Shown: positions 2,641 through 45,290, numbered from the stretch's first letter. The stretch: 64,000 nt of DNA from Eutreptiella sp. 'Long Island Sound 2002' (GCA_964036045.1 OZ038378.1:76880001-76944000), one strand, 5' to 3'. The notes: generated by a model from the letters alone, not told the origin. Made by a program: numbers and translations.

Positions 2641-2684
2641 GGCGTCGCACATCAATGTGAGGTTACGGCAAAGCACCCCAAAGA

Positions 2685-2768
2685 AAGATTGTTAAATCAA
2701 GCGCAGGCGCGGACATCGTACCCCCCCCACCTTTTTGGGGGTCATTCGCGTAGCATACCCCAAGGTAT
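2685..2768 (+). repeat. Dispersed repeat family head (GTTGTTA..CAA...TTTGGGGG(T/C)ATTCGCG-AGCATACCCCAA), copy 1
   Basis: Aligns by eye with 58735-58806 and more loosely with 4797-4955 and 33251-33400. Confidence 0.55.
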
Positions 2769-2982
2769 GGTGTCCGACGTCTAACCCCTGGTAAAGTCAT
2801 CATTATAATAATAATAATCCCCCAATGAATATTTTTGATGTTTAGCCCTTCCCCCCCCCGTACCGGGGTAAACCCCCCCCCCTTTTAATATCACGCGCGT
2901 GATATTATTTCGGTGCGTGATATTATTTTGGGCGTGATATTATTTTGACCACCCCCTGCCTGTCCACCAGATTTTTGTTGTG

Positions 2983-4389
2983 ATGGTTCCTGACTCTGAA
3001 GTTCCATTTCTTGCTGATGTTATTGAGGCCCGGCAGCACAACGAGCTTGTTGTTGAACATGTTTTTGAAGCTGTGACTGATGATGAGGTGTCGGACATTG
3101 AGGAGTACTCCACTGGGGATGACGCTGACAGTGATGTTGAAAACGCTGCTGGGCCAGAAGTTCCTCGTGCTGAAGTTCCTGGTGATGAAGTTCCTGATGC
3201 TGAAGTTCCTGATGCTGAAGTTCCTGATGATGAAGTACCTGATGCTGAAGGTCCTGAACCTGCTGTTGTTCCTGGTGTTGATGGTGATGCTGATGAAATT
3301 GCTCATGCTGCTGCTGATGATGCTGCTGACAATGCTGGTGATGATCCAACTGCAGCTACCAAAAATGAGCGCTTCGTCCAGGCCAAAAAAGATTATCATC
3401 GGGGTAAAGGATCGAGGAACACATTGGGAAAGAGACGACGGGTTGACACACACATCAGGGTGAAAAGACGTGCTGTTGCCCTGCTGCGCGAAGGCCAAAC
3501 TTTCGCCACCATCCAGCGCGCAATCTGGGACATCACTAATGAGCAGTTCTTCCTCGTGAACCAAAGACAATTAAATAACCATTTCTGTGTGGGTCAATTT
3601 TGATGAAATACCAGCCACTCTGGCTGGTGTGATGGGCAATGTTCAGACGTTGGAACACGCTAGAACAGCCAATGTGATGGTAAATTTTCAAGAGAGCCAT
3701 TTCAAACAGATGGGCACTTTGATAGCAATGCTGGGGGTAAAAAAACAAGGGGACCTGTACTGTAATGCAAAACTGAAACCTGCAGTTTTGCTGAAATGCA
3801 AGAAGAGCAAGGTTGTACAAAATCCCCACCAGGTGCAGTGTGTAACGAATGCAACGGGCGTCATCAACACACAATACATGCGTGACCACTTCATCCCATA
3901 CTTGCAAGCACAGCTCCAGAATGTGGGGGGGGGTGCATTATTATTTTGGACTCGGCGCCTGCACACATTTCACAAGCTGTGTTGCAGGCCCTCAGGCACT
4001 GTGGTCTGAGGTATGCTGTGATACCAGGTGGCCTAACCATGTTTATTCAATCGATTGACACTGCATTGGCTGCCTTGTATCGTTTCCCCCACCACAGGTT
4101 GTATGTTTCTCACATGGAGCATCAGGCCAAGCTAACTGCTGCACAACAGCGAGATTTGTTTGTTGAGTTGTGCTATAGTGGCCTGACTGCAGCCACTGCC
4201 AACCTGGATGTGCCTGCAATATTCCGGGATCTTGGTTATATTGATCCCAGCAAAGCAAAGCTTCGAATCCCCTACCAGTTTGCACCCCCAGAAGTTCAGC
4301 CCCAGAATGTTGCAGCTGCGAAGCCCAAGCCGAAACCCAAGGCAGGAGCACGCCAGCTATCTATGGCCACTTTTCTCGCACCAAGATAA
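2983..4389 (+). pseudogene. pogo/DDE_1 DD35D transposase split by two frameshifts
   Basis: WVNFDE (D at 3602), LDSAPAH (D at 3949) and IPGGLTMFIQSID (D at 4057, 35 residues after the second D). Frameshifts at ~3575-3590 and at the T-run ~3944-3947. Acidic repetitive N-terminus. Confidence 0.85.
3157..3262 (+). repeat. 15-bp coding tandem repeat (gaagttcctgatg(c/a)t; EVPDA/EVPGD)
   Basis: About 6-7 units read directly in the transposase N-terminus. Confidence 0.9.
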
Positions 4390-9200: not shown

Positions 9201-12200
9201 ACGAACTATGAGGAGTGGTATTCAATTGTCATTCCTGGTTGGTCTACACAATCCCTACGACCCACCCGTTATAGATTTGAAACTGCGTGCTCATCGAATC
9301 TGACGGTACCTATTCATTTTTCTTGGCCACCACAATGGGAAGGGAGCCGCCAGGTCTAGTTACTTTGTATGGGTGTGTCTCTGTATATTGAATGTGGTTT
9401 GCTTTGTGTTGTTGTGTGCTTTTGGGAAGTTGTCTTTTCGATCGTTCATTTTAAGGCAAGCGACCCACAATGCTGCATGTTATCAGAGCCAAAGCAGTGT
9501 GCAATGAACACTTTGGGCCACCATTCCTAAGTCCGCTAGATTGTTTTGTCTTTGCCTCCGTAAAATTGTGCTCCAAAGCGCATGCCCATGTGTAAGGATC
9601 TTAGAGTCATTGGCACTTCAATATGCCATCACACCTCAAGTGTACAGAAATTTTTTTTTGCAAGAGCACTATGCTAATGAATGGTGCAAAACAAACCAAC
9701 CTGTTGCACCCTATCAGTTAGAATTTTTGCATCAAGTGCATGCTAAAGCCACCAAAAAGAGGGCCGGGCATAATACCATTGCAAAATCTCAGTGACACAA
9801 GGAGCAGCAGAGATCTAAATTCTTCTCTGGTGCGCGAGTGCGACAGAGAGTGACGATTTATATCTTTTTGACAAAAGGCGAATCTTGGCTTTTGGCTGCT
9901 TTTTGATATTTTCGAACTGCAGACTTGATTTCGGAACCGTTGTTTTACCTTGCCTGAAAAAAACCCCGCTTGCAGTAAATCTGTTGGAAATTTACTGGGA
10001 GCCAAGGTCAATAGGCGAAAAGCCGAACAATTTGTACACCGCAATTAGGAGGGCGTTGCAGGTAGATGAGTTATGGAAAAGGGCGGGTGTGGGCCTTAGC
10101 GTAAGGCTGGTTTAGGGGGGGTAGGAAACCGAGGTTGTACCTCATAGCGTAGCTCAGAGAACGAGTTTAGCGAAACTGACTCAAAATGTCACTCTTGTGC
10201 TTAAGATGGCCGGGGGAGGTGAACGGCATTGCGGCAGAGGAAGCATCAGAGCCTAGGGTGGCACACTGAGTGTAAGGGGTAGTATCTAGGTATTCTTTAC
10301 TACTCACGTGTGGCGTTGAGGTCTACCCCTCTTTTTAGTTGGCCTGACATGCAGGTGTCATCATCTTCGAAATCATCTGTATCCAATCGGCGAGGGGAAG
10401 GGGCTTCTACGTCAACATGTACTTCTCTATCCAAGTCGTGCGCCTTCAAATTGGAGTGAGTGAGGACCGCTACAGCAAAACGCAGCGTGGCACTGCCCGC
10501 TAGGCGGCGTTCCATGAACTGGTGGGTGTTGTTTTCGGCGCTAGCAGAGGTGAATGAAAATTTTTTGTATGAAGGCACCATAAGAAAAGGTAGCTGACCT
10601 GTCATGTTTATAGCGAGTTAGGACGGGGTGGGCTTTAGAGAAGGATTTGTGGGCGTCTATGGGACCAAACTCAGCAGCAACACGGAGCACCTAGGACACC
10701 GAATTACTCGGGAGAAAGGACACAGTGATGTAAGATGGCTGGATTGCTTTCATCTGAGCATAGGAACTTACACACTCTTCAAAGCAGGCAAAGATGACTT
10801 GAAAGTTGCTCAATGGGTCAAGCTCCCTACCAAGGCTAAAAAGGGTGAGTTGAACCTTTACTAGGCCAAGCAAATCAAAATTTGAAGACACACCAACAGT
10901 TTGAAATGTGTGGATACTTGGCAGCACATGAGGGTTGTATACTTGACCTGTAGAGAGTGCACCTTTGGAAATTTTTTTGCACGCAAGCAGGATTGTGGGT
11001 GACGATCACACACCTGGGACCGATACTAGAGCAAATGAGTCCCCAAATCATGTTAACAGAGAACAGTAATTCTTGGTTACGATACAACTCATGACGGTCA
11101 ATATAGACCTCAAAAAGTGGATTATCATTGGGTGGGACGTGGGCGGGTCGGGGCACATAGTCCTTGGTAATTGATGGATGGGTCATGGCACCAAGGCCGG
11201 GGAACGTACGTCGGCAGCACAACCCTTTATGAGTGGCATGAAATCTTGGGATGTCTTAACCAATCCCTTTTACTCGTTGGGGTCACCACTCTCAACCAGA
11301 ATGTTGACGCGGATTTGAAAAAGGGTTGGTTCGGACCGGACAAGGTTTCTAAGCAAAGAAGCTAGCTTTAAGCTAACCATGTAAAGCTCAATGGATTTAG
11401 TGCCTATTGTGAGAAAGCAAAATTCTAGTAAGAACATTGGTTTTTCAGGACGAAACATGGCGCTACACCATTCCTTTGATATCTTTTACACAAGAATGGC
11501 TCAGGACCAATTTTATTCACCCAAGGCTTTAAATGTAGGAGACCAATTGGCGGTCCAGCGAGTTGACCATGTGCGGGCCTTGGGTAAAGTGCCTGCGCGA
11601 TACAGAACAGAAACATAGGTGAGAACTCTTTTTTTCGTGAAGAACGTAAGGTGCAGGGGGTGCTCTTCACATAGCTTTTGCGGCTTAGAAAAGCAGCCCT
11701 ATCCTCGAATGGGAAAAGTTTGGCACGAAAAAGAGAATGGACATCAAAATTAGGACTGCCCAATCAAAATTTGTTTGTTTTACAATGAAAAAGGATTTGA
11801 GGTGCAAGTAGGTGGGGAAAAAAGTCGCCAGATAAGTATATATCAATAGGTGGAATGGTTTGGAAAAAAATTTGCAACGGGGCTTGGGTTTTGGAGTCAA
11901 AATATTCAAGTCGGTCACAATTGAATATGTCAATGTATGAATAGCCAGATTCACCGAGGATTGAGAAATCTTCATTCGTGACTAAGAAATGATTTCTTTG
12001 GAGGTACGGGTTCGGGAATGAACATCCTCTTTGTGTTGTTTTCAGGACAAAGTTCAACCGTCTATTACTTTGGCATTGAATTTGCCATCTAGAGTGTCAA
12101 AAATAAGAAGAAAGAATACCACATTGGCTCAATCCGCAGCTTTATTAAAAAAAAGTGGTGGCTTGGATGCCACAACATCTGGTCTATGTGAGGCTGGGAG

Positions 12201-12669
12201 TCCCTTGGGGGAACTTCTCCTTTTTGTGGCACCCTAGGTTTCGGAGAAAAGGTGCCGAACCGCGAGAAGAGATTTTTCCTTTACAAAGTGCTTCCGGCAT
12301 TGTGGTCTCGGAGTTGGTAGCACGGAATTCGGGAAGACGGAAAGGTTGCATGTGTTGGGCGGACTTCCAATCTAGCGTGGAAGACAAACCCAAAGTCTAG
12401 AGGCATGCATGCTGTGAGCGATCTCTGAGAAGTATTGGCCTCTTGGGAAGTAGGGCAGATCAGATAGATACATTGGATAAAGCTAAGGCTCTCCACTAGA
12501 GCGCCCTCAATTTGCTACTAGTGTTTGCCATTGCTACCGTATGCACCCCTCCACATCGCGCTGCCAAACCAATTTTACGGGCCCCGCCAAAGGCGGCCAC
12601 ACACCACACGCTGGCATGACAAGAAACCGGTTTCGACTGCCCCCCCCATGCACGCCTCGGCACTGCTTA

Positions 12670-13100
12670 CTCACTTATGATGAGTTGGCTATCAGCTCCT
12701 TGAACGTTGGAGGCGTCGAGCTCATTGCCAATAGGCTGTGTAGCCTCCTCTCACTCCTCTATCCTCAGCCCTACACCATATCACTACAGGAATACCGCCA
12801 TAGCTCTAGCCTTCCCGCGTGCGACCACGCCAAATCTACCCACGTCCTTCGTCACTCTATATAGACACAGTTGTGGCGTGGTGGTTGAGGCAATGCGGCA
12901 AGAAAAATTCATAATGACGCAAGTTTGGCTGGATCGGTCTCTGCTCCGCCACGTCCCCGGTTGCTTGGCTGAACTTAGGCATGTTTCCTTGGTGCCTTGC
13001 TTTGCTTCCCGGTTTGCTTCTTTCTGGGGTCTTTCTCACCGCCTCAAAAAAGACAACCCAGTCTTGAAAATCCTGCACACCCTTGGGCAGTCACACGAGC
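12670..13100 (+). pseudogene. APE/EEP endonuclease N-terminal remnant of a LINE
   Basis: LAISSLNVGGV...ISLQEYR matches the (S/T)xNVxG...LQE motifs of retroelement AP endonucleases. Downstream motifs were not recovered. Confidence 0.45.
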
Positions 13101-13450
13101 AAGCTGCAACAAGTGGATCAGGCTCACTTGGGTGTGTTGGAGGTACTCAGTGGCGGATGTACATGGCGATGATGGGGAAGGAAACGGAGGCAATCAATAG
13201 AAGAAAAGCAACAAAGGTAGGGGACCCTATGTGACAAAAGAATCACAGTAGGTCACCAAGCACACATGGCCGGGGAGGTCAGGATTGGGATGTTGGGTGG
13301 AGGAAGGTTGCTTGAGTCCCTGAACCCATTCCCACTCTGACCCTCAAGCCGATTCAACGGGTGGTTACACCCAAATCTGGGTGCAGAAATGGCACAAGTA
13401 GGCAAAATTGGGACAATTCCCATGGGTGGCCCGGGGAGCCACGGTTGAGC

Positions 13451-14340
13451 CTATGGCTCATGGGATAGGAGGCACGACCTGAGACTCATACCTAAGTGCA
13501 AGACTTGGAATTCGGCCAAGGCGTATAGGCTACGCTTACTGCATAGCAACACTTCAATCAGTGTCCACAAGAGGACACCAAAAAACATCGTGTTCGGAAA
13601 ATTGTTCTTGAGGCCATTTACAATTCGAACATGGTACTTGGGTTCTGTCAAGAAAAACATAGAGGTGCTGATATCAAACGGCTTCGCCTTAGTGGTCCTT
13701 TGGAAAAGACTGTTAGCAGGAGCCACATGCTCTACATCCGCTAAAAAGGTAGGCCATACCCTGGTAAAATCAGTGGCTATTCGACACACTCCAAAAACAC
13801 CCAGTGTTAAGGTGGTAATAGTTTTTCGGTAGGCGCTTTTTGAAAGCATTAGTTACCCTGCAGCCTGTGTGTGCATAGTCTCCAATGCAAATATGTTCAC
13901 TTCGAAGAAATGCCCCCCACTGAATTTTGTTTACCGTGTCCTCTACCGGAACCAACCTAGAGGCATCGGGGCAGCCCCACCAACATTTTCCCCCTCCGTT
14001 CGTCACCATCATTAGTTTGACATCCCCGGTCAGTTTACATTCAAACTTTTTGGTTCGTTTTTTCACATGGAATGTACAACCTACTTGTAGGTGGATGATT
14101 TGGGCACTTAGGCCCGCATCCTCATGTAAGGCATGCAGCCATGCGGCGTCATCGGCGCTGTCCATGCACGCCCACATCACTCATTTATGGAGGTCCCGTG
14201 CAGCAAAAAACCTTGAGGCCCAGCATTTTGCAAAGACATCTATCCTGGTGACCAATGTGTGCCACAATGCCGTTGCATTGGGGCATATTAAAATCCAAAT
14301 CTTCTCAATTTGCACTTGAAGCTCCCCTGGGGTCTCGGCT
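13451..14340 (-). pseudogene. Mutator/MULE-like transposase remnant
   Basis: WACMD-x-AWLHAL...CTFHVKK gives the MULE D...CxFH motif. Later RVTNAF(K)/SAYRK, across a 1-nt shift in an A-run, resembles TxNxxESxN with GAA>AAA. Contains stops and frameshifts. Confidence 0.55.
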
Positions 14341-14349
14341 ATCTTGAGC

Positions 14350-15400
14350 TATGTGAAAACGAGGTGTTTGAGTGTTGTTGTCGCTGCGCACCGCCGCTCG
14401 ATCATGTTGGGGCCATTGATAGCGTTGGTTGTTGCCGAGTACGGTGTTCCCCTTGTGCGTGCTTCCGCAAGATCACCACGCGTGCATTCGCGCGGGAGGG
14501 CCAACATCTGCCGTATTGATAACCTCAATCTCCCACCGGTGGCCCACAGGTACTTCAGGGGTGCGATGTGGCCCATGCGCCGGAGGACTTTGTTGACGGC
14601 GTTGTACCCGCAGGTGGGGGGTTGTTGTGGCCTGGAGGGGGGGTCCTTCCGTGTGTCAGGGCCTGCCTGTGGGTGATGGGGATGGCCCGGGTCGAGGGTG
14701 CGGCCGCCGTGGATGGCCAACGCCGCTTGATCCACTGGGGCAGGCAGAGCATGGCCAGCCCCAGGTGGTAGCCCGCCCGACCCGAGTTGATTTGGGGCAG
14801 GGCCCGGGCCGGGGCTTGGTCTCCCGGTTGGAGGACGCCCCTGAGGACCCTGTCTTGGGTGGTGGGTTCTCCCAGCGCCCCCGGGGGTGTGGTCCCTGGG
14901 GAGAGCATGGTGTCGGCCCGCCTGAGGACCCATGGGCCATGTGGTTGTGGGCCGGGGAATGCCGCGGCGGAGACTACACAATAGTGCCCGGGTACGAGGA
15001 TTGTACACCAGACCTCGGGCGGGGGCCGGTCGCTATTTGTCGGTGGGGGGGGGGGAGGTCGTCGTCGGGGTTGTGGTGGCCGGTGGCGCAGAGGGCAGTG
15101 TCACGGTCGGGTGCGGTGGCATGTTCCAATTGTTCCGGGTGGTTCGGGTCTGCCGGGTGGTGGTTCTCCGCTAGGGGTTTGTCGAAAGCGCGTGGTTCCT
15201 TCGTGGCTGACGGGGGTGTCGGTGTGGTGTGTCAGGGCCTGGCCCCACTCGATGGAGGGGATCCAGATGCGCTGGTCTTGCATGTGCTAGCCAGCCCTCC
15301 AGACGAAGAGGTCCACGATCGCCTCGTGGCACTACACGAGGGTCCTCATCGTTGTGGTGCTTGGCAACTGGGATGTACAATCCCCCACCACCCTAAACGA
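14350..15400 (-). pseudogene. GC-rich decayed coding fragment, probably retroelement-derived
   Basis: Frames with GC3-biased codons broken by TAG stops (HEAIVDLFVWRAG*HMQDQRIWIP; QDRVLRGVLQPG...LPQWIKRRW). No diagnostic motif. Confidence 0.3.
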
Positions 15401-15595
15401 CAACTACTAATTGTGGGCCCTTTGCGTGAGCGCACTAGGGCCTAATGGAAACACCGGCCCCTTCGCATGAGCGCACTGGGGCGTCATTCAAATCTTGACC
15501 TCTGTGCATGGGCACACTGGGGCCCAAATAAGTTACTGGCCCGTGCGCATGAGTTTACTCGGCCCTCATTGAACTCAAACGGGCCAATTGGGACC

Positions 15596-15790
15596 GCTGG
15601 AACCCCCGGTGGAACCCCTTACTCGAACCCCTTTATGCCCTGGAACCCTTTGCTAGAACCCCTGCTAGTACCCCTTCCAGCGCTGGAACCCCTTGCTAGA
15701 ACCCCCTTCCAAAGCACCCTTCCAGCGCTGGAACCCCTTCCAGCACCCCTTCCAGCACCCCCTTCCACCTCTGGGACCCCCCCCCCTTGT
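15596..15790. repeat. CTGGAACCCC-family short-motif array (downstream of cassette A gene)
   Basis: More than 10 degenerate ctggaacccc/ctagaacccc/ccagcacccc units with ccagcgctgg palindromes. Confidence 0.9.
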
Positions 15791-16262
15791 TTTGCCTTGC
15801 TCTTGCATTGACACCCCCCCCCCCCAAGGTACAGGCATAGGCATAGTGAAGCGGTCAAAGCGGTCTAATGGTCATAAATGTGCAATGTATCAATGTACTA
15901 CCGCGAACCTCGCGCCCCATGGCGCTACCTCTTCACTTGATTCCAAAATCACAGAGAATACAATAGTATAGCAGAAATTTGGGCCAATGAATGCATGCAA
16001 GCGTATAGGGCTGAAGTCTCGGTGGTGTCCGCAAGGGGTATACTATGTGAAGCCTCCCACTCGTGACACCACCTTAGGCACGTCGTGCACAGCGCGACTA
16101 ATGTCCTACGCGAGGTAACGCGCACCCACGGGCAAAAACCAAAAAAGGTGTCTCTTTGTTCAAGGTGGCACACTGCCATCAGCACAATTGCACACCATCA
16201 CGTACATGCACATGTGGGTCACTCGAGGGAATGGCCAACCAACAAGACGCAACTCCTAGGTG

Positions 16263-19200
16263 TTATCTCAGGTTCCAACAGGTCTCATCCAACAGGTCGC
16301 ATCCCCAGGTCCCAAAAGCTCGCATCTCCAGCGCCTACGCCTCCTTGTAATTGCCCGCCATCACTGCCAGCAGCTGCTTTGCCTCCTGCTTTGCTTCGGC
16401 GGTCTTGGTGTTGCTCTCCACCAGCTGCTTTTTGATACTTTCGTTCTGTACTTCCAACTCCTTGACCCGTTTCCGCTCATTGTCCAACCAGGCCTCGGCG
16501 TTCGCCCGTCCTGTGCGCTCCGTCTCAAGGTGCTTTGTTAGCCGGCCAATCAATGTCTCTGCCTTGCTCTTGGAGGCGTCAGATGTCGCCTTTGCCACCT
16601 CCGAGGGGACGCAATCTCTCAGGGTCACACTCATCTGCTGCGACAGGGCGACCTTGCACCGTTGTACCACCTCGTCATCCATAGCCCGAATGTCAACCAC
16701 TTCTTGGGACTGCTCGGATTGCTGGGACTTGGAGTGCAATAATTGTTGTGACATCGCTGCGCGGGTGGTTTGGGCCTTGTCCTTGCGCTGGGCTTTGTCC
16801 TTAGCCTTCTCCTTTGGCTCGTCTTTGGCTTGGTCCTTGCCTTCGTCTTTGTCTTTGGGGCTCTCCTTCGGCTGATCCTTGTCCTCCTCATCTTCGTCGG
16901 CTCCTTGCACCTTAATCGCAGCGCCCCTTGTGTGCCCCCGGTCGCCAACGTAGCTGCCTCTGTCCTCCTTCACCCATGCAATGAACGCCTTCATGGCGGA
17001 CTCTGGAACCTCATCTCCTCCAACGCCTTGCAGCTTCGCAGACCATACCACACACTCCACCCGTCCTCCTCATGGTACATCTGGTACGACCAAGATCGGT
17101 GCAGCCCTTTCCCGACACCACACATGAACTCACCTCGCTTCTTGCCTTGTGCACCCTCCATCCGGACCAGAAACGTGCGCGCCACCTTCACGCCGCTTGT
17201 TGTCGCCACATTGAGCTCCAAAGCCTTGTACCACGGGGTTTGCCCAAACTGGAACATCGCTTTGTCACGGCCCCCGGCTTTGCTCCTACACTCACTGGCG
17301 AAGTCACGACGTCGCGGGCGTGCCACGCGACCGACATTGTATCCACCACAGATGCTGCAGCACTGGCACTATCCCCTCTTGCCTGCAGCTCAGCCACCGA
17401 CTCGTCCCGCTGCACCAGTTGAGGCCACACGGCAACAGTTGCCTGAAAGAACAAGCAGTGCACGTAGTACAACATCTGCTGCAACCCCTGCTGGAACCCC
17501 TTTCTGCACTGGAACCCTCTGCCGGAACCCTGCTGGAACCCCCCTTCCAGCGCTGGAACCCCCTTCTAGCGGACCCTCCCAACGCCGGAACCCCTTCTTG
17601 CGCCTTCCTAGCACCCTTCCAGCACACCCTTCCAGCGCCAGAACCCCTGCTAGCACCCCTTCTAGCGCCCTTCCAGCACCCCCCCCCTCCAGGCGCAAAT
17701 TTTGCCTAAGGCTTCAACCCCATTGCACTCCATGCACATACCTGTTAGCAAGGGCACCAATACTCCTTCGGGCGCTCCGGGTCGGCCACTAGAAGCTCCG
17801 ATTTGACCAGGACAGGCGTGTCAACGACCCACGGTTGCCTGCCACGTCCCATCGCAGGATTTGGGTGAAAGGGGGGTCCACGTTGTCCTCCACCACTGCC
17901 ATCCCACCCACCTCGCCTTCGCGCACCACCATCAGGCTGCTTGGGTGCGTGGCAATGACAGGGAACTTGCTTGGGTTTGGGGCTCACGGCTCCTCCTCCT
18001 CGTGGACAAATCGGCCCAGGGGACAATCTTTGGGGGCGCAAGGCTGGGCAAATGCGTTGGTCACCGGGCCCGCTGAAATCTTTGCCGCCAGTGGCCCTCG
18101 GGCGATTAGTGGTGTACATTACCGTTTGATCGAAGGGCATCATCAACACAGGCGCAAACCCGCACAGATCCTCCTCCACAATCTTCTGCGTCCCCACATT
18201 GACTTCCCCTGCTCCCTCGGTATCGATCTGCGCATGCGCGTTGTCCACAGCAAGCACATCCTCCCCAAAAACCCGCTGACAGTCTGCGCACAGTTGACCC
18301 ACATGTACAGCACAAATGGGACTGTCGTCACAAGCCCAACACTTCGGCGGTGGGTCGGCCTTCACCTAACGGTTGCACCTGGCTGCTGTACAGTGCACGG
18401 CTTTCGGCGACGGCGGCGACGGCTGTTGCGCGGGGGCTGTAGCCTAGGATGGCGGAATGGTCGGCAATGTTGTCTGGTAGTGGACGCGGCGTGTCGCAAT
18501 GGCGGCAAAAGCGATGATAGGGGTTCATCCAGCCGGCGCTTCTCTCGGGACAGCCCCACCACGGTGAATGACGTAACTGCTCAAGATCCACAGGTCGCCT
18601 GCCAGCATACTCATCGAGACCTCCTGCCACAGGTAGGGAACACCAGAGCTAGAACCGTACACAAAGATGTTCTTGCGGCGGTCCATGGGGCAGTCTAGAT
18701 TCATAGGCATGAAGCACGAGAAGGTGTGCTCCACCCCAACGTTGTGCAACTCCAGCGGTAGATCCCAATACCATAGTTGTGGCCGATCGGACATTGCCCA
18801 CACTTACCCAACCTTCACCAAGAACAGACCCGTGTACTTTGTGGACAGGCCTTGCAGAACCCTTTGCGCCCTAAGTACGACGTGAGGTAGCTGAAGACCT
18901 TCGTCTTGACCCCCACTGCTCGTCGGAATCACCGCGTACACCGCATCCCTGTCCCCTGGATCGGGTGGCCGGTTTGGGCTTGGCCATGCCACGTTGAAGA
19001 TGCCGCCCCACCTCTGCCCCACGGTGTCCGCCTCTATCTTCATGTTCGCCAGCATCTCGCCATCCTTCGCCAAGAACTCCTCATTGAACACGTGCCACTC
19101 TGATCCAGCTGCGACAGGTCATGGTCCCTTTCCCGGAAGACGTCAGCCTGCTTCACCGGTTCGCTTGTCCCAATGAGCGGCAGGGCGTGGCACATGGTGA

Positions 19201-19795
19201 TGGGCAAGACCGAGTCCTTGCCCTCCATCAGCACCGGCGTAGTCAACCCCATGAGCCCCGGCTTCCAGCGGTACGGGGAGTTGCTCGTGAGGGAGTAGTT
19301 GGGGAGGGACATGGCGGGCTTGCTGTCCACCACGTTGCGGAGGGTGTCGAGCTGGGTGTGGTTGAAGGGGTACTTGTCCTTCCCGGCCTTCTCGGTGGTG
19401 GGCTTGTGGGCAGCGAAGAGGAGCGTGGTGCCCTCCATCCCCACATGACGCCGTTGTGTGTTGTTCATGGTGGGGTTCGCCCGTCCGGTGCAGGCTTGCA
19501 CAACATCATCCATATAGTCGGCGTGTACCCGGAGTTGCAGGATCGGCACGTGGGGGTTGTCCTCGAGGTTCCCATGTAGCCAAGCAGTGAGGGCGCACGG
19601 CTGCTTGTCGTTGTTGAAGAGGGTGCGGGTGAGGCGGATGCGGGCAATGGTGGTGCCCGGGGGAATCACCACCTTGGTGTAGGGGTGGGTGGTGAGGTTG
19701 GTGCAGCCCAAACCATCGGGGCCAGCATAGCCCCGAGTGCCCACGGCAGCCCGGGCAGCCCTTGTCTAGTCGACCAAGGGGGCCAACAAAGCCAT
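16263..19795 (-). pseudogene. Cassette A two-exon multidomain gene: GNAT-like + PhyH-like 2OG-Fe(II) dioxygenase + Cys/His Zn finger + unknown domains + coiled coil
   Basis: ATG at 19795 directly follows a pyrimidine-rich AG. ILQLRVHADY...RRHVGMEGTTLLFAA is GNAT-like. WGGIFNV, PQLW(Y)WD (18770-18762), FSCFMPMN and LAGDLWILSSYVIHRGG...IIAF form the HxD..H jelly-roll. CxxxxC..CxxC..CxxH..CxxC lies at ~18390-18280. WCPC is followed by CAG|GTATGT. Exon 2 from 17442 has the Y domain (LELNVAT..SYQMY..WSVECVV..LQGVGGDEVPE), an acidic linker and a coiled coil. Several stops and frameshifts. Confidence 0.7.
17443..17741 (-). other. Phase-0 GT-AG intron of cassette A gene containing a CTGGAACCCC array (17483-17690)
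   Basis: Minus-strand donor cag|GTATGT and acceptor ttgttctttcAG|gca. The downstream frame is open (track ORF 17188..17484 frame). Confidence 0.65.
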
Positions 19796-19846
19796 CTAGG
19801 GTGAAATGCAAGGGAACAATGGTGAAACAAGGGCGGCGGACCCCTT

Positions 19847-37060: not shown

Positions 37061-37929
37061 GCTGCCGCAAGTGAGTGATGGTCAGACATGCCATGGGGGA
37101 TGGTGGATGATGCGACTAGGGGTACTCCGAGCAAGCACAACACCGGCCCCCGTTGTAGGCGGTTACTATTTCGCCACCTCGCCATCGCCCCCTGCCCTCC
37201 ATGCATAGGCCCCCACATGTGTGCCTAGGGGGGCTAGACAAGTTAGCGATAAGTTAGCGCTTGGGTTACCCCATCACTCACTCATTTTCCCATCACGGCC
37301 CCAATAGTGGCAACCAACCATGGAATTGGCAGCGCCTGCATCTGGAGTTGCACCGTAGCCGGTGCCGCAACACCAATCACCACGCCGTAAACGCGAATAT
37401 ATTGACCGTCGGGGGCTCACTTGGGGTGCGACACCACAACAGCCGACAAAATTTGCGCCAGAGCTAATGATGCCTGCCTGCAGGGTCTTGCCGCAACCAC
37501 GATGCCCCTGGACGTACTCATGGCTCCTTGTGCTTTCTCCGTATGAAGCTACGAGACCCTTGCTACAAAATGGTGGTGGGCAGGGTGCTCAGCCAGTTGG
37601 AGTCCCACAAGTGATCTCGGGCCAGTGGGTAGGACGGGTGGTCATGTGGGATTCCCCCTCTGCCCCCTCGCTCTATTTTATGCAAGACCCAAGGCTTAGG
37701 TAACCTTTTTTTGTTTGGGCCAATCTTCTTTCTTCCGCGCCTTCCGCACGCGTGTATGTACCCACTGTGAACGGCAGTTTTGAATGAGTACGCTCACTTT
37801 GCTGATTTTTAGGCCGATTTGCCTATTGTGCCCTGTCTTTGTGCCCGTGTGCGGTGCTTACTTCACCTAAAGTTCATACAAATTCGTACCGCGCAATTTG
37901 TAGCTTGAATAGGTCATAATGTAGCTTAA

Positions 37930-38020
37930 ATTCGCAAATAAAATTTGAATTCGCGTTCGCATTCGCAACCTAAATTTGCCATTGATATGTGCCCTCACAT
38001 TCGCGCGAACTTCGCGCGAA
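37930..38020. repeat. TTCGCGCGAA palindrome cluster 1
   Basis: Perfect copies at 38000 and 38011, with partial ttcgc copies upstream. Confidence 0.9.
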
Positions 38021-38124
38021 TATCCTTTGCTTTTCGCGTCAGCATGTTGTTCTTGTCGTATGTCTTTTGTTCCGACCTCACTTTCGCTTTTTCTGTGACC
38101 ATGTCCAGCTAGCAGTCGATCCCC

Positions 38125-41100
38125 ATGTCCCAGATCGGGTTCCTCTCCCTCCGCGACCCGGCAGACGGCACCCTGGGCCACTACCAGGGCCTCGCCCTTC
38201 GCGCCGGCACGTTGGAGGAGGCCACGTACACGGGGGGCCTGGCAGTGGAGGAGGTGGTGGGGTGGGCGAAAGGGTTGGCCATGCCCCCCCAGGTGATCCA
38301 TGTGGACATGCGCACCCCCGAAAGGGCGGGATGGTTTGGGAAAAAAGGTTGGGCCACTTACCTTTTCCGGGAGTTGCAAGTGGCCCTCCCGGGGTTGCGG
38401 GCCGTCCGGCTCATTCCCGCCCGCGACACGGTGGAGAGCCTTTTGGGAATCATGGCCACGCACACCGTGGGCAAGCCCAAGGCTGGCCTTTGTGCCATCT
38501 ACCCCACCACTGGCCTCGTTTACTGCCCCATGAGGATGGACATGATTGCCATCAATAACTATTTTCCTGCCGGTGAGCCGCAAGCTAACCATTCTAACCT
38601 TCCTTTTCAATGGCAGGGAGTGCAGGCCCAGTGGTGGGACGATATGGGCATCTTGCCCAGCCACCCGACCGTGCCCCCTCTTCACCACATCCCCAATATC
38701 ACTGTGCCCAGTCTCCATAGGATGAAGGGGCTCGGTTGGTATCGGGGAATCGCGGACCCCCCCCCTTCATTACGCCCGAGCCCCCCTTGCTCATGGCACC
38801 CCTGCAGGACCCCCCCTCGTATGCCACCGCTAACCCCTCCGTGAAGGCTGACCGCCCAGCCCCCCCCGATGGCTCGCAACTTCATGGACGGCCTCGGCTA
38901 CACAGTCCACCGCGATATTGTTGTCGCGGAGGACTGCAAGACCACCTGGGGGAAGGTGGAAAAAATTTGGGGTGAGGGGAACCAAGTTCCTCAACACTTT
39001 GACCCGGTGTTCAATGTGAAACCGGTGTAGGAACAGAGGAAGCACCCCACCCTTCCTCAGCGGTACCAGTACAAGCCCTCCAAAACTAGGGGGCTGGCTG
39101 GTGCCCTTATTAAAAAGTTTATTAACTCCATGCAGGACCGTGTCCCCGATCCGTTCGAGGACTTGTTTGAGATGCCGTGTTCGGTCATCGTGTCGGGTGC
39201 TGAGTCGGGGGACCACCTCCCGCACACGGATGTCTCCACCGCCCCCGACATGCCCCCCCCCCCCTGACCGCCACCCCTCCAGCTGCCACATCTCCACCTT
39301 CGTGGCCCTCTCCCCCCAATACCGCCTCAACATCCAGGCGGGAACGGCGCTGGGGGAGGCCACGGAGGAGGGGTGGGACGAGGTCCTCCTCGAACAGGGG
39401 GAGGTCCTCGTCATGGTCAGCACTGCCCGGCACCGCGGGCTCCCCTCTCCCCCCGGGCAAACGATGCAAGGGGCACTGTTTACGCAGTTGACCCCCGATC
39501 GGCGTCATTCGGGGGTTAAGCCAAATACGACGCATCTGGACCCCCTCACCCCCCTGGAGCTCAAGGACTGCCTCGGCCTGCTGAAATGGGGGGGGGTGCA
39601 TGGGGGAGGACGTGCCCACGTTCGGGCAACTTTTGCTGTTGGGTGTTGGATTGGAGGCTCGGGTGGGGCTGGCCAGGGACGTGGTGGACGACGTCTTCAG
39701 GACCCCCCGAGGTGCAGCTAGGCCCCCCGGTGTGCACACACCATCCCTTGTTCCTCTCGCGCTCCGCGCACGGCATCTCCCCCGTCACCGTGCGCAAGGG
39801 GGAAATCCTCCTGTGGAACGGGGCCTATGAGATGGAGGTGGTGAAGGCGGACTCGACGGACAGGGACGCGGAGGTGACATGGGCACTTGGTGCTACGCTG
39901 CCCCCCACGCGCCCGGCCCCCGCGTGGCGGCTGCTGCACGCTGTGCCGGAGTGGAAGCGGGCGAAGGAGTCCAAGAAGGGGACGTGGACTATGACCTGCC
40001 CGTGTGAATGTGAGGTATGCATTGTTTTCTACCCCGTATTCGCGCGAAGTTCGCGCGAAGTTCGCAACTGTGTGCTTCGCATTCGAATGTGCTCATTCAC
40101 GAATTTCTCGCGAAGTTCGCGCGAACTTCGCGCCAACTTGGCGCGAATTTCACATGAATATTTACATTTCATTCATTTTTTTCATTTCATCTCCTTCTCA
40201 GGAGGCATGGCACTGCTGGCTGCCCGACCCCTGAGCGGCCGTGGCCCCCTAGAAGCGATTCTGCCCGGCCGGGCACACCAGTGCCCCTGCACTGCCGGGC
40301 ACGGGCACAGGCACGGGCATGGGCACGGGCACGGGCGGCCACGTGACCTTCGACATGCCCTCGAGTTCGGCCGGCGCCCCGCCCGCAGACATCCGGCTGG
40401 CCGGTCCCGCGGCCCCCCCTCCAGCCCCGGGCCCCGACCCCGTGGTCGTCGCAAACCCTGTGGCAGGAACCGGTGCCACGGCCTACCCGTCGGACCCCCC
40501 CCCCCCATCACGACCCTCTCCATGCTGCGGACCCAGCCCCCGTTCGCATGGAAGCTGGACCTCCCGGAACGGAAGCGGGCAAGGGAGGAGTTCGTGGCGA
40601 CGACGTGGGAGATCGAGGTGGAGACGCACGATGGGGCGCGGGAGCCGCCCCTCAAAATTTCTTTCCCCTGCGCCATCACCCACCCCAACCCCGCGGGAGG
40701 TTGGAAGGAGGGGGAGAGGGTTATTGCCCTCTACGCATACCGGCTGCGTGGAGGGCATTGGAGGATGGATTGTTGTGTGCAGGGTAGGGCGGGGGTGCCG
40801 GTGGGGCAGCTGAGGCGGGTGGCGGCTTTGGCGGTGACGGGGTTGAGGGGATGGGGGGACCGGGTGGAGGAGCACATGAGCTACGCCTGGCTCCAAATGC
40901 TCACCCGGGCAAAGGAGGAGCAGCGCCGGCATTTGGGGGAGGTGAGGGGAGTGGTGGACGTGCATGCGGAGGAGGGGGAGGGGGAGGGGGACGATGCCTC
41001 CTCCATGCGGAGCTCCAGGAGCGGCGGGTCCAAGGGCAAGGTGGGCCGGCCCCGCAGGGCCCCCAAACTGCCCGCCAAGTCGGGGGGCCAGCCCTCGGCT

Positions 41101-41690
41101 GCACAACCCCCGCCGGCAGTGCACGTGGACGCGTGGGTGGCGGCGCAGGCGGGCGCCATGCCTGAGTGGCAAAAGCGGGCGGTGGCGGCGGAGGGGGAGG
41201 TTCTCCTCCTGCGGGGCGAGCTCCAAGAGGCGGAGCAGCGGGCGCAGGAGGCGGGGCGGCGGGCAACGGCAGCGGAGCGGGAGCGGGACGTGCTGCGGGC
41301 GCAGGCCCGCAAACCCAAGCCCAAGCCGGGGCAGCAGCAGGAGGTGGGGGGAGCGGAGGGGGGGGGGGGGGGGGGCAGGGGGGGGGGTGAGCGACGGGGT
41401 GAAGTACCTCATGGCGGGGAGCCAGGCCTGGAAGTCCCAGGCAGAGAAGGTGAAGGGGGAGCTCTCAGCAGTGGCCGCCACCGCGCCTGCTGCTTGGCCA
41501 GAAGGAGGGGGGGCTGTCCTTCGAGTCGGTGATGCCAGGGTATAAAGCTGCCTTGGACAGCCATGACGCTGTTGAGAAGCGGTACCTGGGGGACGCCCTG
41601 TTGGAGGGCGCCACTAACCCTGCCTTCAAGCCCGCCACGCCCGCCGAGGCCCAGGGCTCTGGGAGCTCCATTGGCACTGCAAGCCAGTAG
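38125..41690 (+). pseudogene. Cassette B two-exon multidomain gene: GNAT-like + PhyH-like 2OG-Fe(II) dioxygenase + unknown domains + coiled coil
   Basis: IHVD..FGKKGWATYLFREL is GNAT-like. FMDGLGYTVHRDIV, PVFNV, SVIVSG..DHLPHTD (H 39223, D 39229), STFVALS and LEQGEVLVMVSTARHRG (H 39431) form the dioxygenase. WTMTCPCECE|GTATGC, then exon 2 from 40202 (EAWHCW..KRFCPAGH, WEIEVET..LYAY..WRMDCCV..LRGWGDRVEE, coiled coil). Stops at 39028, 40232 and 40250. Frameshifts mostly at C/G homopolymers. Confidence 0.75.
40015..40201 (+). other. Phase-0 GT-AG intron of cassette B gene containing TTCGCGCGAA cluster 2 (40039-40147)
   Basis: Donor gag|GTATGC and acceptor catttcatctccttctcAG|gag. Splicing joins in frame to track ORF 40319. 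Confidence 0.7.
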
Positions 41691-41760
41691 TGTCACCCTG
41701 CGAACGGCCCTTTTTAACCCTTGTAAATTACACCGGGGCCAACCACTGTCCTGAACATGC

Positions 41761-41856
41761 TGCGAACTTCGCGCGAAATTCGCGCGATTCCTTGCAAATG
41801 CGCGACCGACCTAGCCGACCACTGTCCTGGGATTTTTTGCGCGAACTTCGCGCGAA
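41761..41856. repeat. TTCGCGCGAA palindrome cluster 3
   Basis: Copies at 41768, 41779, 41836 and 41847. Confidence 0.9.
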
Positions 41857-42025
41857 TTTATGCAGTATTTTTGTTTAATAGTGGTTCCCAACACATGGGG
41901 TGTACGAATGTGTTGTACAAATTTTTTGTTGTGCGGTGGATGCCAATGAGGCTGGCTTTGTCTAACTTTCTTGACTTTCATAATCAACATGCATTGCCTT
42001 TTGCCTATTGTCAGTGTTTTTTGTC

Positions 42026-43826
42026 ATGGGACGTGGGAGTGGCGACAAGGGGAAGAAGGCCTTTGCCCATGTCAAGTCCAGGCAGCACCGGGCCCGCCGC
42101 TTGAGGACATTGCAAGAAGTTGTATCGGGGGAACTAGGAGCCGAGTACGTGGTGAGGCACCTTCCGGACACGGGGCAGATTGTCCTCACACCAGTAGACG
42201 GGGGGGGGGAGTGGTGCTCTACCCACTGCACCATCCATGTGGGAGAAGACCGTCGGAGCGGTGTGGCGCATCCGATCGCTGCACTTGTCCAGGACGGAGG
42301 CGCAGTACCTCACTCCCCATTTAGTGGAGGGAGTACCATGGGAGGACTTGTGGGTCACCGTGCAGCAGCTTGCGCAGCCCGCGTAGGAGGGGTTTGTAGC
42401 CAAGACGGGGGATGACACGGAGCTATACGGAGCCTTTTGCCCGTTACCGGCGCGGTTGCAACACCTGTACCGTTGCCGACCGGTTGAACCCGCCCACGTC
42501 CAACAACCGGGCAATCCAAGGCTGCATTGGATGCCACTAGCAGTGGACGGCACGTCGCGGCACGAGGCGTCCTTCGTGCATTGCACCCTCGGGGGTACCC
42601 GTAGCCCCGATCAACTAGCAAGTTGGTGGCTATTGGGGGTTAGTGAGGAGTGGTCGACCTTGTATGCGGCTGCTCAAGAGGTTGACTTCGACCAACAGTT
42701 GTGGGATGCTAGTAAGGTTGTCTTCCAAGACACTTCCGGTGCTGACCGGGAAACACTTTTCTTCCTCTGTGCCGATGGCAAGGCACAAATTTTAATGGCC
42801 AACGGTAAAAATTTCAAAGCCGAGGCTCCACGAGCCATGGTTTGTTGGGTTTGCGGCCGCAATAATCCAGACTGCCTTGCCAATTTTGGTTTGGAAGCCA
42901 CCATTGACGGGTGGTGGGAGGTTGTGCTCCCCATGGGAGCCATATATAGACACATCCTAGCCAAACGTCGCATTCCCGACTACGGGTTGCACGGGGTGCT
43001 GCGGGTAACTATTTGTGGTATTTCCGGCATGAGGGATGCGGTGTCGGCTGCCATTGGCAAGTCCGCGGCGGTCGTCGTCCGCAATTTTTTCCAACCGATC
43101 CTAGATGTTGCCCGCATGGCAGCCAAGACGGTAACAAAGGATAGGATGGCAAAGGGCAATGACACCGCCAACGCAAAGGGAAACGTTAGGCTAGAGTGTG
43201 CCGCGGCTGTGCAACTCATGCGCACCCGGAGGTGGGAGGCACGCATTGCCGTGTGCCTTGAAGAGGGGGGAATGAACAACAAGCGGGTGGGGGGAAAACC
43301 ATGGGGGGATGTTTGTAGGCAGTGGTGGGACAATTTTGCCAAGATGTGTATATATGCATGGTGGACATCTTGGCTGTCCGGGGCAGACTTAGGAAGGTTA
43401 CGTGACTGTAGCATAGCAATGGGCAAAGCCCACTTACTCTTGGAATGGCCTAAGCTGTTGTGGTCACATTTGTGGATTGACCACATGTATTTTTTTGCCA
43501 GCCAATGGAGAAATCTCTCCCAATGGTCATGCTTCACTATGGAAGGCAACCACCGTAGGCTCAAGCGCATGTTGCGCAACAGCGGGGGCCTAAGCCTTCT
43601 GCGTGGGCGGCTAGGTGTGCAGGTTGTCGTTGACAACCACACCATAGACAACAGTCTCGGTGCGGAGGGGTGGGACGTCACAAAGAGGTCCATGCGTGGG
43701 CAAGGCCCAGTGACCGTACAACAATTGGCTAGGCGGGCCCGCAAGAGGGCCTTTAGTGACCTCAACTGTGTACATACCCTTATGCAACGTTTCAGACGAC
43801 GCAAACAGCGCAAACAACGAGCATAG
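42026..43826 (+). pseudogene. Transib/RAG1-core-like DDE transposase (~600 aa; one frameshift, one stop)
   Basis: N-terminal KAFAHVKSRQHRARRLRTL resembles a nonamer-binding-domain-like segment. LAVDG (D 42546), CADGK (D 42774), CWVC (42843), DYGLHG, HLWIDH and MEGNH (E 43542) give the D-D-CxxC-LH-HxxxxH-E order of RAG1/Transib. Frameshift at the G-run ~42200-42210 and TAG at 42384. The last 456 codons are open. Confidence 0.85.
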
Positions 43827-43909
43827 TACGTTTGGACAGTTCATGGCCGGCGAAGTGGACGTGCGTGTTATTGTGAATTAAGATGTGCATGCATACCTGT
43901 ACGCCAATC

Positions 43910-43970
43910 TGGGACAAATTCGCGCGAACTTTGCGCGAAGTTCGCGCGCACTTCGCGCGAATTTGTCCCA
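43910..43970. repeat. TTCGCGCGAA cluster 4, itself a ~60-bp palindrome
   Basis: tgggacaaattcgcgcgaa...ttcgcgcgaatttgtccca, with units at 43919, 43930, 43941 and 43952. Confidence 0.9.
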
Positions 43971-44250
43971 GATTCGCATTCGCAAGTGTCGCAGCAGACA
44001 CAGGCGAACGGCACAATACGAATAGGGCATTAAACGGCTACCATGGCCACGCAGTGTATGGAAAAGGGGTGGTTTTTTCTCGCAGGGACCTGTATTTTAT
44101 TTTTTTAGAATTTTTGAAACCATATCCTCCATTCCAACCCATTGAAAAAGGCCTTTTTCGGACAAAATAGTTGTTTTGGGTACCCATATTCGCTCTCTCA
44201 TTCAAAAGTTCCCTTAATGTCAATTCGCAAAAGGTACATAGTAGGGTTCT

Positions 44251-45290
44251 TTGGTCATTCCACTAGTATCTCTTCTTCCCTATGTTGCAGAACTCATATC
44301 GCAACATCCCATAAGCATGTTCTTTGGCAACCCGGTCCAACTGGGCCCCCTTGCAAAACGCAGCGCCGTTATCTCCGCAATCCCCTATTTTTGCTTTCCA
44401 GCCAGACGAAGTGGGAAGAAAAGGCAAGAGGCATACAATGTTGGACAGAAAGCATGTTCCACACTTTTTTTGAACACCCCAACGGCAACTCGGTGTGATT
44501 TTGTAAGACAAGCAACCATAATTATGTGGAAAGACTGTGTGAGGTGCACTGCGTGCTGCATGAGTTCCTACTCATGCAAACCGATTTGCGTGCATGTTGG
44601 GCAACACGGTTGCCACAAACACACGATCTGTTGCAACATGCGTTTTTTTTTATCTTTCATGGCCATGTCAAATTTGCACTGTCTTGCACCCGAGGCCCCA
44701 AACAAACCCCAAAACGGAACCCTGGACAGGCCCCATCCGCCAAGACAAGTTGCAAAGCCATCAACTTCCACAACACCAGAACATGTCCTTGAAGTTCCCT
44801 GGGATGACTTTTTTGACAATGTCACAAAGGTGGTAAAGGTTTTCAGAGGCGCACCTACAAATTTTCATCTTTATAGGGATCCAACGGATCTTGTGGTCAC
44901 CGATGGGGAAAAGTTGGTGGTGAACCACTTGCTTGAGCATGATATTTTGAGTCAAGTGGAGCCCGAGCTTTTGTTGGAAGACCTTGATAGGGTGCCTTTC
45001 ATAGAGAAGGCGTCCATTTTCACTGAGAACCCCCCTGTGGTGGGTAGGCCCAAGGATTCAGGGGCCTGCCGTACTGTTTATGGTGACTATGGAGATCACA
45101 ACCACCACAAGCACAACCCCCACAAGTTGCACGATCTACCTGTGTTGAAAACAATTGCAGATCTTGTACAATGTTGGATATGGCCAAGATCTTTATCTGC
45201 TTTGGGATCTCCCGGATGCGTTTTTGGCACAACCCCCTTCTCCTTGGCCGCGTGGTTGCTTGCTTTTCATTGGGCCCCGTCCGGGTAGGG
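44251..45290 (+). pseudogene. Cys-cluster + AlkB-like 2OG-Fe(II) oxygenase remnant
   Basis: Open 345-aa frame with CxxCxxC..C..C.H..C.H..CCN, then RTVYGDY...LPVLKTIADLV. A shifted frame gives WH..LG.VVACFSLGPVR (AlkB-type SLG..R). The HxD Asp and distal His were not found. Confidence 0.35.

Follow-up and report, generated by a model that had tools for sequence, protein, structure and literature searches.

What occupies the centre of this stretch of the Eutreptiella sp. 'Long Island Sound 2002' genome (GCA_964036045.1, OZ038378.1:76880001-76944000), and does the dioxygenase-like gene found there belong to it? The stretch, hereafter referred to as the window, comprises 64,000 nucleotides (nt), and positions given without a locus name are counted from its first letter. 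An initial annotation, made from the sequence alone, proposed that a unit at 37763-44056 is a transposon related to Transib and RAG1, carrying a cargo gene that combines a GNAT-like domain with a 2-oxoglutarate (2OG)-Fe(II) dioxygenase. Our analysis replaces these limits with 37757-44238. Under the best explanation, which we hold to be very probable, this segment is one copy, decayed and no longer functional, of a cut-and-paste DNA transposon that is present multiple times in the euglenid genome and encodes a transposase with a predicted RAG1 fold and an oxygenase-like accessory protein. The element region has a guanine plus cytosine (GC) content of 63-65% and lies within a repeat-rich eukaryotic window; light-harvesting-protein genes are found at a related locus.

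Limits, target-site duplications, and decay of the element

A search with the 456-codon open reading frame (ORF) of the transposase returned 98 relatives, nearly all located on megabase contigs of one assembly, and five loci were subsequently fetched. Four other copies (L002-L005) are 83-93% identical to the window copy and have different flanks. L004 is a full-length copy (83% identical) that matches window positions 37759-44239; L002, L003, and L005 are partial or rearranged copies, all of which stop at window 44238-44244. The sequence common to L002-L005 runs up to 44238 and then diverges, the flanks past this position being unrelated among the five copies, and the right end is therefore placed at 44238, which is 182 nt past 44056. 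On the left side, the summed depth of contigs from four public runs rises from ~39 to ~8,655 (~200-fold) in the bin 37752-37772, and loose contig ends accumulate at 37755 and 37757 in the same contigs; the left end is therefore placed at 37757. The limits derived from shared sequence and contig depth give an element with the ends 5'-TGTACCC...GGTACA-3', and the same termini bound a copy of a 62%-identical subfamily at locus L006 (7995-19610). The proposal that the unit is a transposon is thus supported, its ends recurring at other loci in different flanks, and the CACTG(T/C)G ends first assigned to it have to be abandoned. CACTGYG is found 43 times in the window, and neither of the two cited copies is terminal: CACTGTG (37763) sits six bases inside the left end, and CGCAGTG (44050-44056) sits 182 bases inside the right end. 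CACTGTG was also considered as a RAG-like heptamer and rejected, because it lies inside the element, is frequent in the window, and is not present at the left end in the L006 sister subfamily, which starts with the same terminal heptamer as the window copy and then differs from it in sequence.

The ends are two-part and unequal, each consisting of a heptamer, a spacer, and an inner box containing TTTGAAT (Table 1), and within one element the inner boxes of the two ends agree over 11-12 bases. The left-end spacer measures 14 bp in all three copies (the window, L004, and L006), and the right-end spacer measures 24 bp in five of six (the window, L002, L003, L004, and L006) and 20 bp in L005. This 14/24 spacing is kept across two subfamilies whose transposases are 62% identical; a further family member nested within the L006 copy shows no such asymmetry. 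At the positions where a RAG recombination signal sequence (RSS) carries a CAC-heptamer, a 12/23 spacer, and an A-rich nonamer, the heptamer TGTACCC, 14/24 spacers, and the TTTGAAT box were observed. The transposase would be expected to cut at the TG/CA termini and to pair one end having a 14-bp spacer with one end having a 24-bp spacer, as RAG and some Transib families pair signals of the 12/23 type.

Insertions of the family duplicate 2 bp of target sequence, and not the 4-5 bp that had been predicted. The window copy is flanked by TA (37755-37756) and TA (44239-44240), the L006 copy by TG and TG, and the element nested in L006, which spans 10976-15343 and has inverted repeats that match perfectly over 36 bp, by CT and CT. 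Removing the nested element together with one CT restores the reading frame of the L006 host gene through its conserved downstream domain, which removal of the insert alone does not achieve. In addition, TA directly precedes the left end in approximately half of the read contigs. Duplications of 3 bp or 5 bp were considered and rejected, since neither fits the window copy or the L006 copy. Weighing against the proposed duplication is the small number of copies from which it derives, only three or four, of which L004 is ambiguous, its flanks reading TG/TG only if its first two bases are mutated.

The ORFs and motifs originally described were all recovered at their positions, including HLPHTD (39214-39231), ARHRG (39425-39439), and KKGWATYL (near 38335) in the cargo gene, but both genes of the window copy are disrupted. 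Cargo exon 1 contains stops at 38842 and 39028 and frameshifts at the poly-C tract 39253-39264 and between 39583 and 39694, while exon 2 contains stops at 40232 and 40250, which are sense codons in other copies, and indels at ~40498 and ~41481. The transposase gene carries a frameshift in a run of ten G (42200-42209) and a TAG at 42384-42386, both of which are missing from a 92%-identical relative, P0001. Four in-frame stops of the window copy are base substitutions. The frameshifts fall mostly in long C or G runs (38756, 38860, 39255, 39702, 40498, and 41481), where other copies differ by 1-3 bases, and some of them may be assembly errors rather than real lesions. This poor state of the window copy is all that favors a different account, in which the genes came to be neighbors fortuitously or the unit arose by segmental duplication and is not mobile. 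The sharp common ends, the unrelated flanks, the 2-bp duplications, the insertion of one element into the gene of another copy, and the high depth all speak for a mobile element, and we give the alternative almost no credence.

A transposase with a predicted RAG1 fold

In an alignment of 20 relatives of the transposase (36-92% identical), D31, D107, and C133 never vary, and conservation is at least 90% at C130, H338, H343, and E363. D31, D107, and E363 correspond to window positions 42546, 42774, and 43542, where the initial annotation had placed the acidic residues, together with the CxxC, LH, and HxxxxH motifs. By our own count, C133 and H338 are separated by 205 residues and H343 and E363 by 20 residues; in mouse RAG1, the corresponding intervals are C730 to H937 (207) and H942 to E962 (20). 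The AlphaFold model of the transposase has a predicted local distance difference test (pLDDT) score of 60 and a predicted template-modelling (pTM) score of 0.52. When this model was compared with the PDB using Foldseek, RAG1 or HzTransib accounted for 42 of the 44 top matches, with a best E-value of 9e-3 and a probability of 0.97. Alignment with VIA-align yielded Z-scores of 11.6 for RAG1 (model residues 1-406 on RAG1 563-1006), 11.1 for the amphioxus RAGL protein (BbRAGL), and 10.4 for HzTransib; the best 34 entries were all RAG1, BbRAGL, or HzTransib, and the first unrelated entry scored 5.9. A search of 48,161 representative chains conducted without Foldseek identified exactly six chains at a Z-score of at least 8, all of them RAG-family. 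Matches among the AlphaFold-DB clusters were uncharacterised eukaryotic proteins, with E-values down to 4e-5. The predicted fold, together with the order and spacing of D, D, CxxC, HxxxxH, and E, matches the RAG1/Transib catalytic core and characterizes the protein as a DDE (aspartate-aspartate-glutamate) enzyme, so that the assignment to the RAG1/Transib fold is upheld at the level of the model.

Several observations weigh against this assignment. No Pfam match, to RAG1 or any other family, was obtained for eight family members even at an E-value of 5, and a profile built from the 20 transposase members found no RAG1 or Transib chain among the PDB sequences at E-values up to 10. The model itself is mediocre, and its confident part is helical, a situation in which a Z-score of ~11 is less decisive and middling Z-scores are common. 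Pfam scans of all window pieces likewise gave no match, a phmmer search of the transposase against the PDB sequences gave no relevant match, and a profile search of 1.84 billion representatives retrieved 643 relatives, none of which could be named. As no sequence profile reaches RAG1, the safe label is that of a RAG1-fold transposase of the CACTA-Mirage-Chapaev-Transib (CMCT) clade, and we infer that the protein is such a member.

The catalytic residues of the euglenid family form the series expected of the CMCT clade (D31, D107, C130-x2-C133, H338-x4-H343, and E363), and its 2-bp duplication falls within the 2-5 bp of the clade. The termini of the window copy, the L006 copy, and the element nested in L006 read 5'-TG...CA-3', and not 5'-CA...TG-3' as in most members. 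A position within the Transib superfamily proper, with both the ends and the target-site duplication being derived, would explain why RAG1, BbRAGL, and HzTransib provide the best structural matches, and also why the ends are built of heptamer, spacer, and box. Kapitonov and Jurka (2005, PMC1131882) reported several Transib families with an RSS12-like repeat at the 5' end and an RSS23-like repeat at the 3' end, and the euglenid element shares with them the short 5' and long 3' spacers in the same polarity relative to the transposase gene. Furthermore, a 2026 preprint describes Transib-lineage elements with 3-bp and TA duplications and with termini not starting with C (10.64898/2026.08.26.747230), so that duplication length and end sequence can vary within the Transib lineage. 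However, the euglenid family duplicates 2 bp rather than 5 bp, its terminus is TGTACCC rather than CACAATG, and it has no profile similarity to RAG1, its likeness to Transib appearing only at the level of the fold. To our knowledge, RAG1, RAGL, and Transib are the only transposases of the CMCT clade with solved structures, and any member of the clade would for this reason match them. The C(2)C and H(3-4)H motifs are likewise common to the whole clade (PMC12730594). We therefore regard placement within Transib proper as unlikely and retain the broader CMCT assignment. Of the description as Transib-like, the fold stands and strict membership does not; similarly, the reading of D-D-E plus C2H2 residues as the RAG1/Transib core was correct as to residue order and overstated as to exclusivity.

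The accessory gene and the palindrome arrays

At least five diverged subfamilies have oxygenase, coiled coil, and transposase in this order on a single strand. A large accessory gene, with conserved HxD...H and Cys/His regions and a coiled coil, precedes the transposase gene in all subfamilies inspected. The gene order is seen in the window element, L004, L002 (rearranged), L006 (P0099/P0005 type), L008, the element nested in L006, and a second copy on the minus strand of the window. In L008, the three genes are intact and encode 669, 406, and 582 amino acids (aa), and in the metagenome contig L007 the coiled-coil gene adjoins the transposase gene. Intact cargo and transposase proteins form clusters of 193 and 203 members, respectively. 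Because the gene order is kept in at least five subfamilies, the linkage is not a matter of chance, and the oxygenase-like gene is co-mobilised, as first proposed. Transposase copies lacking the cargo had been named as the observation that would point to fortuitous adjacency; in the copies checked for this, the cargo is present. The features of the window copy are collected in Table 1.

Table 1. Features of the transposon copy at 37757-44238 of the window
Feature	Position	Strand	Description
5' terminal inverted repeat	37757-37788	+	Heptamer TGTACCC (37757-37763), 14-bp spacer, inner box GTTTTGAATGAG (37777-37788); L004 homology starts here
Palindrome array 1	38000-38020	.	Two TTCGCGCGAA copies in 11-bp phase, upstream of the cargo gene
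Cargo exon 1, pseudogene	38125-40014	+	N-terminal domain, proline-rich linker, PhyH-like 2OG-Fe(II) oxygenase region (likely), C-terminal Cys/His region ending CPCECE
Putative GT-AG intron (187 nt) or intergenic spacer	40015-40201	+	Palindrome array 2 inside (40039-40059, 40116-40125)
Cargo exon 2 or separate gene 2, pseudogene	40202-41690	+	Low-complexity start, conserved domain ~40540-40950, basic stretch, coiled coil ~41140-41330, conserved tail
Palindrome array 3	41768-41856	.	TTCGCGCGAA at 41768 and 41847, between the cargo and transposase genes
Transposase gene, ~600 codons, pseudogene	42026-43826	+	Core ORF 42456-43826 (456 codons): D31, D107, C130/C133, H338/H343, E363
Palindrome array 4	43919-43961	.	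TTCGCGCGAA at 43919 and 43952 plus degenerate copies, downstream of the transposase gene
3' terminal inverted repeat	44195-44238	-	Read inward: heptamer TGTACCT, 24-bp spacer, inner box TTTTGAATGAG

The HxD motif of the cargo protein lies at 39223-39231 and the distal H at 39431-39433, the two halves being split by a frameshift in the window copy. An intact relative, P0099 (677 aa as called), maps by tblastn to 38125-40161 across two stops and two frameshifts, with its residues 6-672 aligned to cargo exon 1, and it belongs to the cargo cluster of 193 members. Four subfamilies with cargo proteins that are 20-45% identical can be aligned at HTD (HRD in the most distant copy, that of L006) and at RH(H/R)G. 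In relatives belonging to two subfamilies, the HxD...H region gives sub-threshold Pfam matches to PhyH (E 0.034, 14.8 bits against a cut-off of 22) and to 2OG-FeII_Oxy_3 (E 0.06-0.1, 14.7 bits against a cut-off of 27). The nearest named neighbors in the ESM Atlas, which relies on a language model, are PhyH, HalD, and 2OG-oxygenase clusters at 0.93, the queries being P0099 residues 255-500 and an unbroken L002 piece of the window's subfamily, which are 43% identical to each other. These sequence comparisons make it likely that the region is a PhyH-type 2OG-Fe(II) oxygenase. Of the dioxygenase originally proposed, the HxD...H triad is thus conserved and a curated profile match is absent, the rating as likely being based on the sub-threshold Pfam matches and the Atlas neighbors. 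The TET_JBP profile gave no match at E-values up to 10 among the scanned cargo proteins.

The GNAT domain that had been postulated upstream of the oxygenase region finds no such support. The N-terminal 235 residues of the cargo protein have no Pfam match, and their best Atlas similarity is 0.70, without acetyltransferase neighbors. The K-x-G-W-A motif lacks the Q/R that motif A (Q/R-x-x-G-x-G/A) has at position -3 (GKKGWA, GGRGWA) and is lost in L008 (LGKSWM).

The oxygenase assignment also has evidence to contend with. No cargo match reaches a curated Pfam cut-off, none at all was obtained with Pfam oxygenase profiles in the window's own subfamily, and the cargo profile has no match among the PDB sequences. 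Moreover, the AlphaFold model of a 640-aa cargo protein, computed from a 20-row alignment, has a pLDDT of only 32, so that the jelly-roll fold lacks support from the model. If the HxD...H region were not an active 2OG oxygenase, or if it were a host gene carried passively without a role for the element, the failure to reach a curated threshold, the poor model, and the lack of an identified 2OG-binding residue would all follow. Yet the motif and the gene have been kept with the transposase across subfamilies that are only 20-45% identical in their cargo proteins, intact ORFs fill clusters of ~190 members, and four independent weak signals indicate the same clan, which renders an inactive or passive cargo fairly improbable in our view. 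By analogy with other transposons, an active PhyH-type oxygenase would work on behalf of the element, its most plausible role being to oxidise a mark on DNA or chromatin through which the element would otherwise be silenced.

The oxygenase and coiled-coil blocks may form one gene of two exons or two separate genes. Gene-2 proteins of L008 and L007 match window positions 40606-41118 and 40654-40974, respectively, and the Pfam matches of this block to coiled coils are weak. In three subfamilies, the conserved part of the oxygenase block (ending in ...CPCECE, ...CPCDCK, and ...CICSGK) runs directly into a GT; similarity stops at this GT, and the read-through tails vary in length. An AG after a pyrimidine tract opens, in phase 0, a frame into the conserved downstream domain in L002, L006, and L008, the AG of the window copy being located at 40200-40201. 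The peptide AW..LPDxR, found right after the AG, is common to the window's subfamily and L006. From these sequence features, we favor, with moderate confidence, a single two-exon gene with an intron at 40015-40201. A GT-AG intron of matching phase in three subfamilies thus fits the ~1,100-codon two-exon gene originally described.

Euglenids add a spliced leader to most mRNAs, and this feature opens a serious, if less favored, alternative, in which oxygenase, coiled-coil protein, and transposase are three separate genes, each with its own spliced-leader acceptor, and 40015-40201 is the spacer between the first two. Upstream of each of the three coding blocks lie a pyrimidine tract, an AG, and, close by, an ATG; in L006, an ATG overlaps the acceptor in frame. 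Several points count against a single gene: the palindrome arrays found in the intergenic spacer at 41768-41856 and in both subterminal regions are also present in 40015-40201, the AG could serve euglenids as a site of spliced-leader addition, and no 40014/40202 joint is listed among the short Logan contigs, which are of unknown library type. On the other side, three separate genes would not account for the GT that, in three subfamilies, directly follows the conserved part of block 1 and marks the end of similarity, nor for the AG in phase 0 with the conserved downstream frame. Furthermore, the nearby ATG at 40207 is out of frame with AW..LPDxR in the window's subfamily, and block 1 has no conserved stop codon, leaving the two-exon gene as the preferred structure. 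One estuary metatranscriptome contains pieces that are 90-95% identical, which is not proof of transcription. Short contigs with intact transposases (P0049, P0060, and P0043) were considered as transcripts and rejected, being genomic metagenome contigs without a spliced leader.

The palindrome arrays provide a further shared feature. All nine copies of TTCGCGCGAA in the 64-kb window lie inside the element, in four clusters, compared with 0.01 expected by chance. Each subfamily possesses its own 10-bp palindrome, arranged in 11-bp phase at the same four positions, namely before the cargo gene, in the intron or spacer, in the gap between cargo and transposase genes, and after the transposase gene. 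The window copy and L004 share TTCGCGCGAA; L006 and L007 share TTCGTACGAA, which is present in 28 copies in L006 and differs from TTCGCGCGAA by one central dinucleotide. L008 carries TGAGCGCTCA, the element nested in L006 carries TAACTAGTTA and ATCGCGCGAT, and L014 has a further palindrome of its own in its upstream region. The arrays span 8268-19315 in L006, 4307-11886 in L008, and 39-3051 in L007. They are putative binding sites for an element-encoded protein, which might act in regulation or in the assembly of a transposition complex. It has to be set against the overall account that the functions given here to the oxygenase and the palindromes are pure inference.

Other members of the family, and neighboring repeats, were observed along with these features. 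On the minus strand of the window, 13496-19800 is a second, very diverged member with the palindrome CCAGCGCTGG, comprising transposase pieces (13496-14165), a coiled-coil ORF (16335-17060), and an oxygenase-like region (18213-19094). A tblastn search of window pieces against the window revealed no paralogue at 1e-3, and the diverged window copies were detected only with proteins of other subfamilies as queries. A fragment at 44875-45168 on the plus strand, ~640 nt beyond the right end of the element, has 71% protein identity to the oxygenase of the element nested in L006 and is a remnant of yet another family member. The rearranged copy L002 (3672-16558) has an inverted oxygenase block, a partly duplicated coiled-coil region, and 6.5 kb of foreign sequence inserted at the site corresponding to window 43990, with four bases common to both sides. 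The intact L008 element has 125-bp inverted repeats of 91% identity and is flanked by tandem arrays at 2500-4050 and 12159-12563, with a period of ~41 nt and in inverted orientation, which are either a satellite that received the element as an insertion or part of the element itself. An identical 554-aa transposase, P0049 (43% identical to that of the window), occurs on contigs L009-L013 from five separate aquatic metagenome samples, and intact family members are therefore widespread in the environment. Beside the L001/L006 element, a piggyBac-type transposase gene (Pfam DDE_Tnp_1_7) was found at L001 12136-13776. A G-rich satellite of 61-bp units (51 copies, 92% matches) extends from 60888 to the window end at 64000 and accounts for the strong GC skew there.

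Relation to known transposon systems

In the literature on Transib or CACTA elements in Euglena and on PhyH cargo in transposons, we found no description of the euglenid family. The statement of the initial annotation that no description exists of a RAG1-like transposon with a dioxygenase cargo was nevertheless too strong, since fungal RAG1-like transposons with a TET/JBP dioxygenase were described in 2025: ESTA, Plavaka, and EnSpm transposons of the CMCT clade encode such an enzyme (Kojima 2025, PMC12730594). ESTA is linked to RAG1 only by profile or structure methods (HHpred) and makes 2-bp TA duplications (PMC12730594). A counter-silencing role has been proposed for the TET/JBP genes of the fungal transposons.

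Taken jointly, the observations invite a broader reading, which as a whole we offer tentatively and hold to be rather doubtful. Under this reading, euglenids would harbor a deep, undescribed lineage of RAG1-fold transposons with a 14/24 pairing rule analogous to 12/23. The lineage would depend on a dedicated fusion protein that joins PhyH-type oxygenase, zinc-binding region, and coiled coil and alters a mark on DNA or chromatin, for example in thymine-hydroxylation (base J) or demethylation pathways, and each subfamily would use a private 10-bp palindrome code for self-recognition. If this were true, asymmetric end pairing would be an ancient property of the RAG1 fold and not an animal innovation.

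Transposases with the RAG1 fold attract study as the origin of V(D)J recombination. The euglenid family combines two-part ends of unequal length, a duplication of 2 bp, and an oxygenase-like partner that is always present; this combination widens the known range of the fold and offers a tractable way to ask whether the asymmetric pairing of ends is older than animals. The theme of a transposon carrying its own 2OG oxygenase, known in fungi with TET/JBP, extends to Euglenozoa with a different, probably PhyH-type, oxygenase family, which suggests convergent counter-silencing. In practical terms, the family explains hundreds of nameless ORFs without a Pfam match in the annotation of the euglenid genome.

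CACTA/En-Spm elements encode a TnpD transposase and a TnpA protein that binds subterminal repeats. By its catalytic motifs, the euglenid family falls in the same clade, and it similarly has a second element-encoded protein and many short repeats near both ends. It differs in having no Transposase_21/24 match, and its arrays also lie between genes and consist of perfect 10-bp palindromes in 11-bp phase that are specific to each subfamily.

With Transib, RAG1, and RAGL (PMC1131882; 6pqn, 6b40, and 4wwx), the euglenid transposase shares the predicted fold of the catalytic core, the residue order, and a near-identical spacing, and the ends share a terminal heptamer, a spacer, and an inner conserved box. 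In contrast, there is no detectable sequence similarity, the heptamer is TGTACCC rather than CACAATG/CACAGTG, the spacers are 14/24 rather than 12/23, and the duplication is 2 bp rather than 5. The euglenid element also carries a large gene for an oxygenase and a coiled coil in place of a RAG2-like partner. The suggestion that this cargo occupies the position of RAG2L in ProtoRAG did not hold, as it has no kelch match and lies upstream in the same orientation as the transposase gene rather than convergent with it.

The fungal ESTA, Plavaka, and EnSpm elements resemble the euglenid element in holding a 2OG-Fe(II) dioxygenase gene, often along with a third gene, inside their inverted repeats. 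Nevertheless, the euglenid oxygenase is PhyH-like and has no TET_JBP match, its target-site duplications are TA, TG, and CT and not only TA, and its termini are TG...CA, whereas those of the fungal elements are CA...TG. The two-part ends with 14/24 spacers and the subfamily-specific palindrome arrays further set the euglenid family apart from its fungal counterparts.

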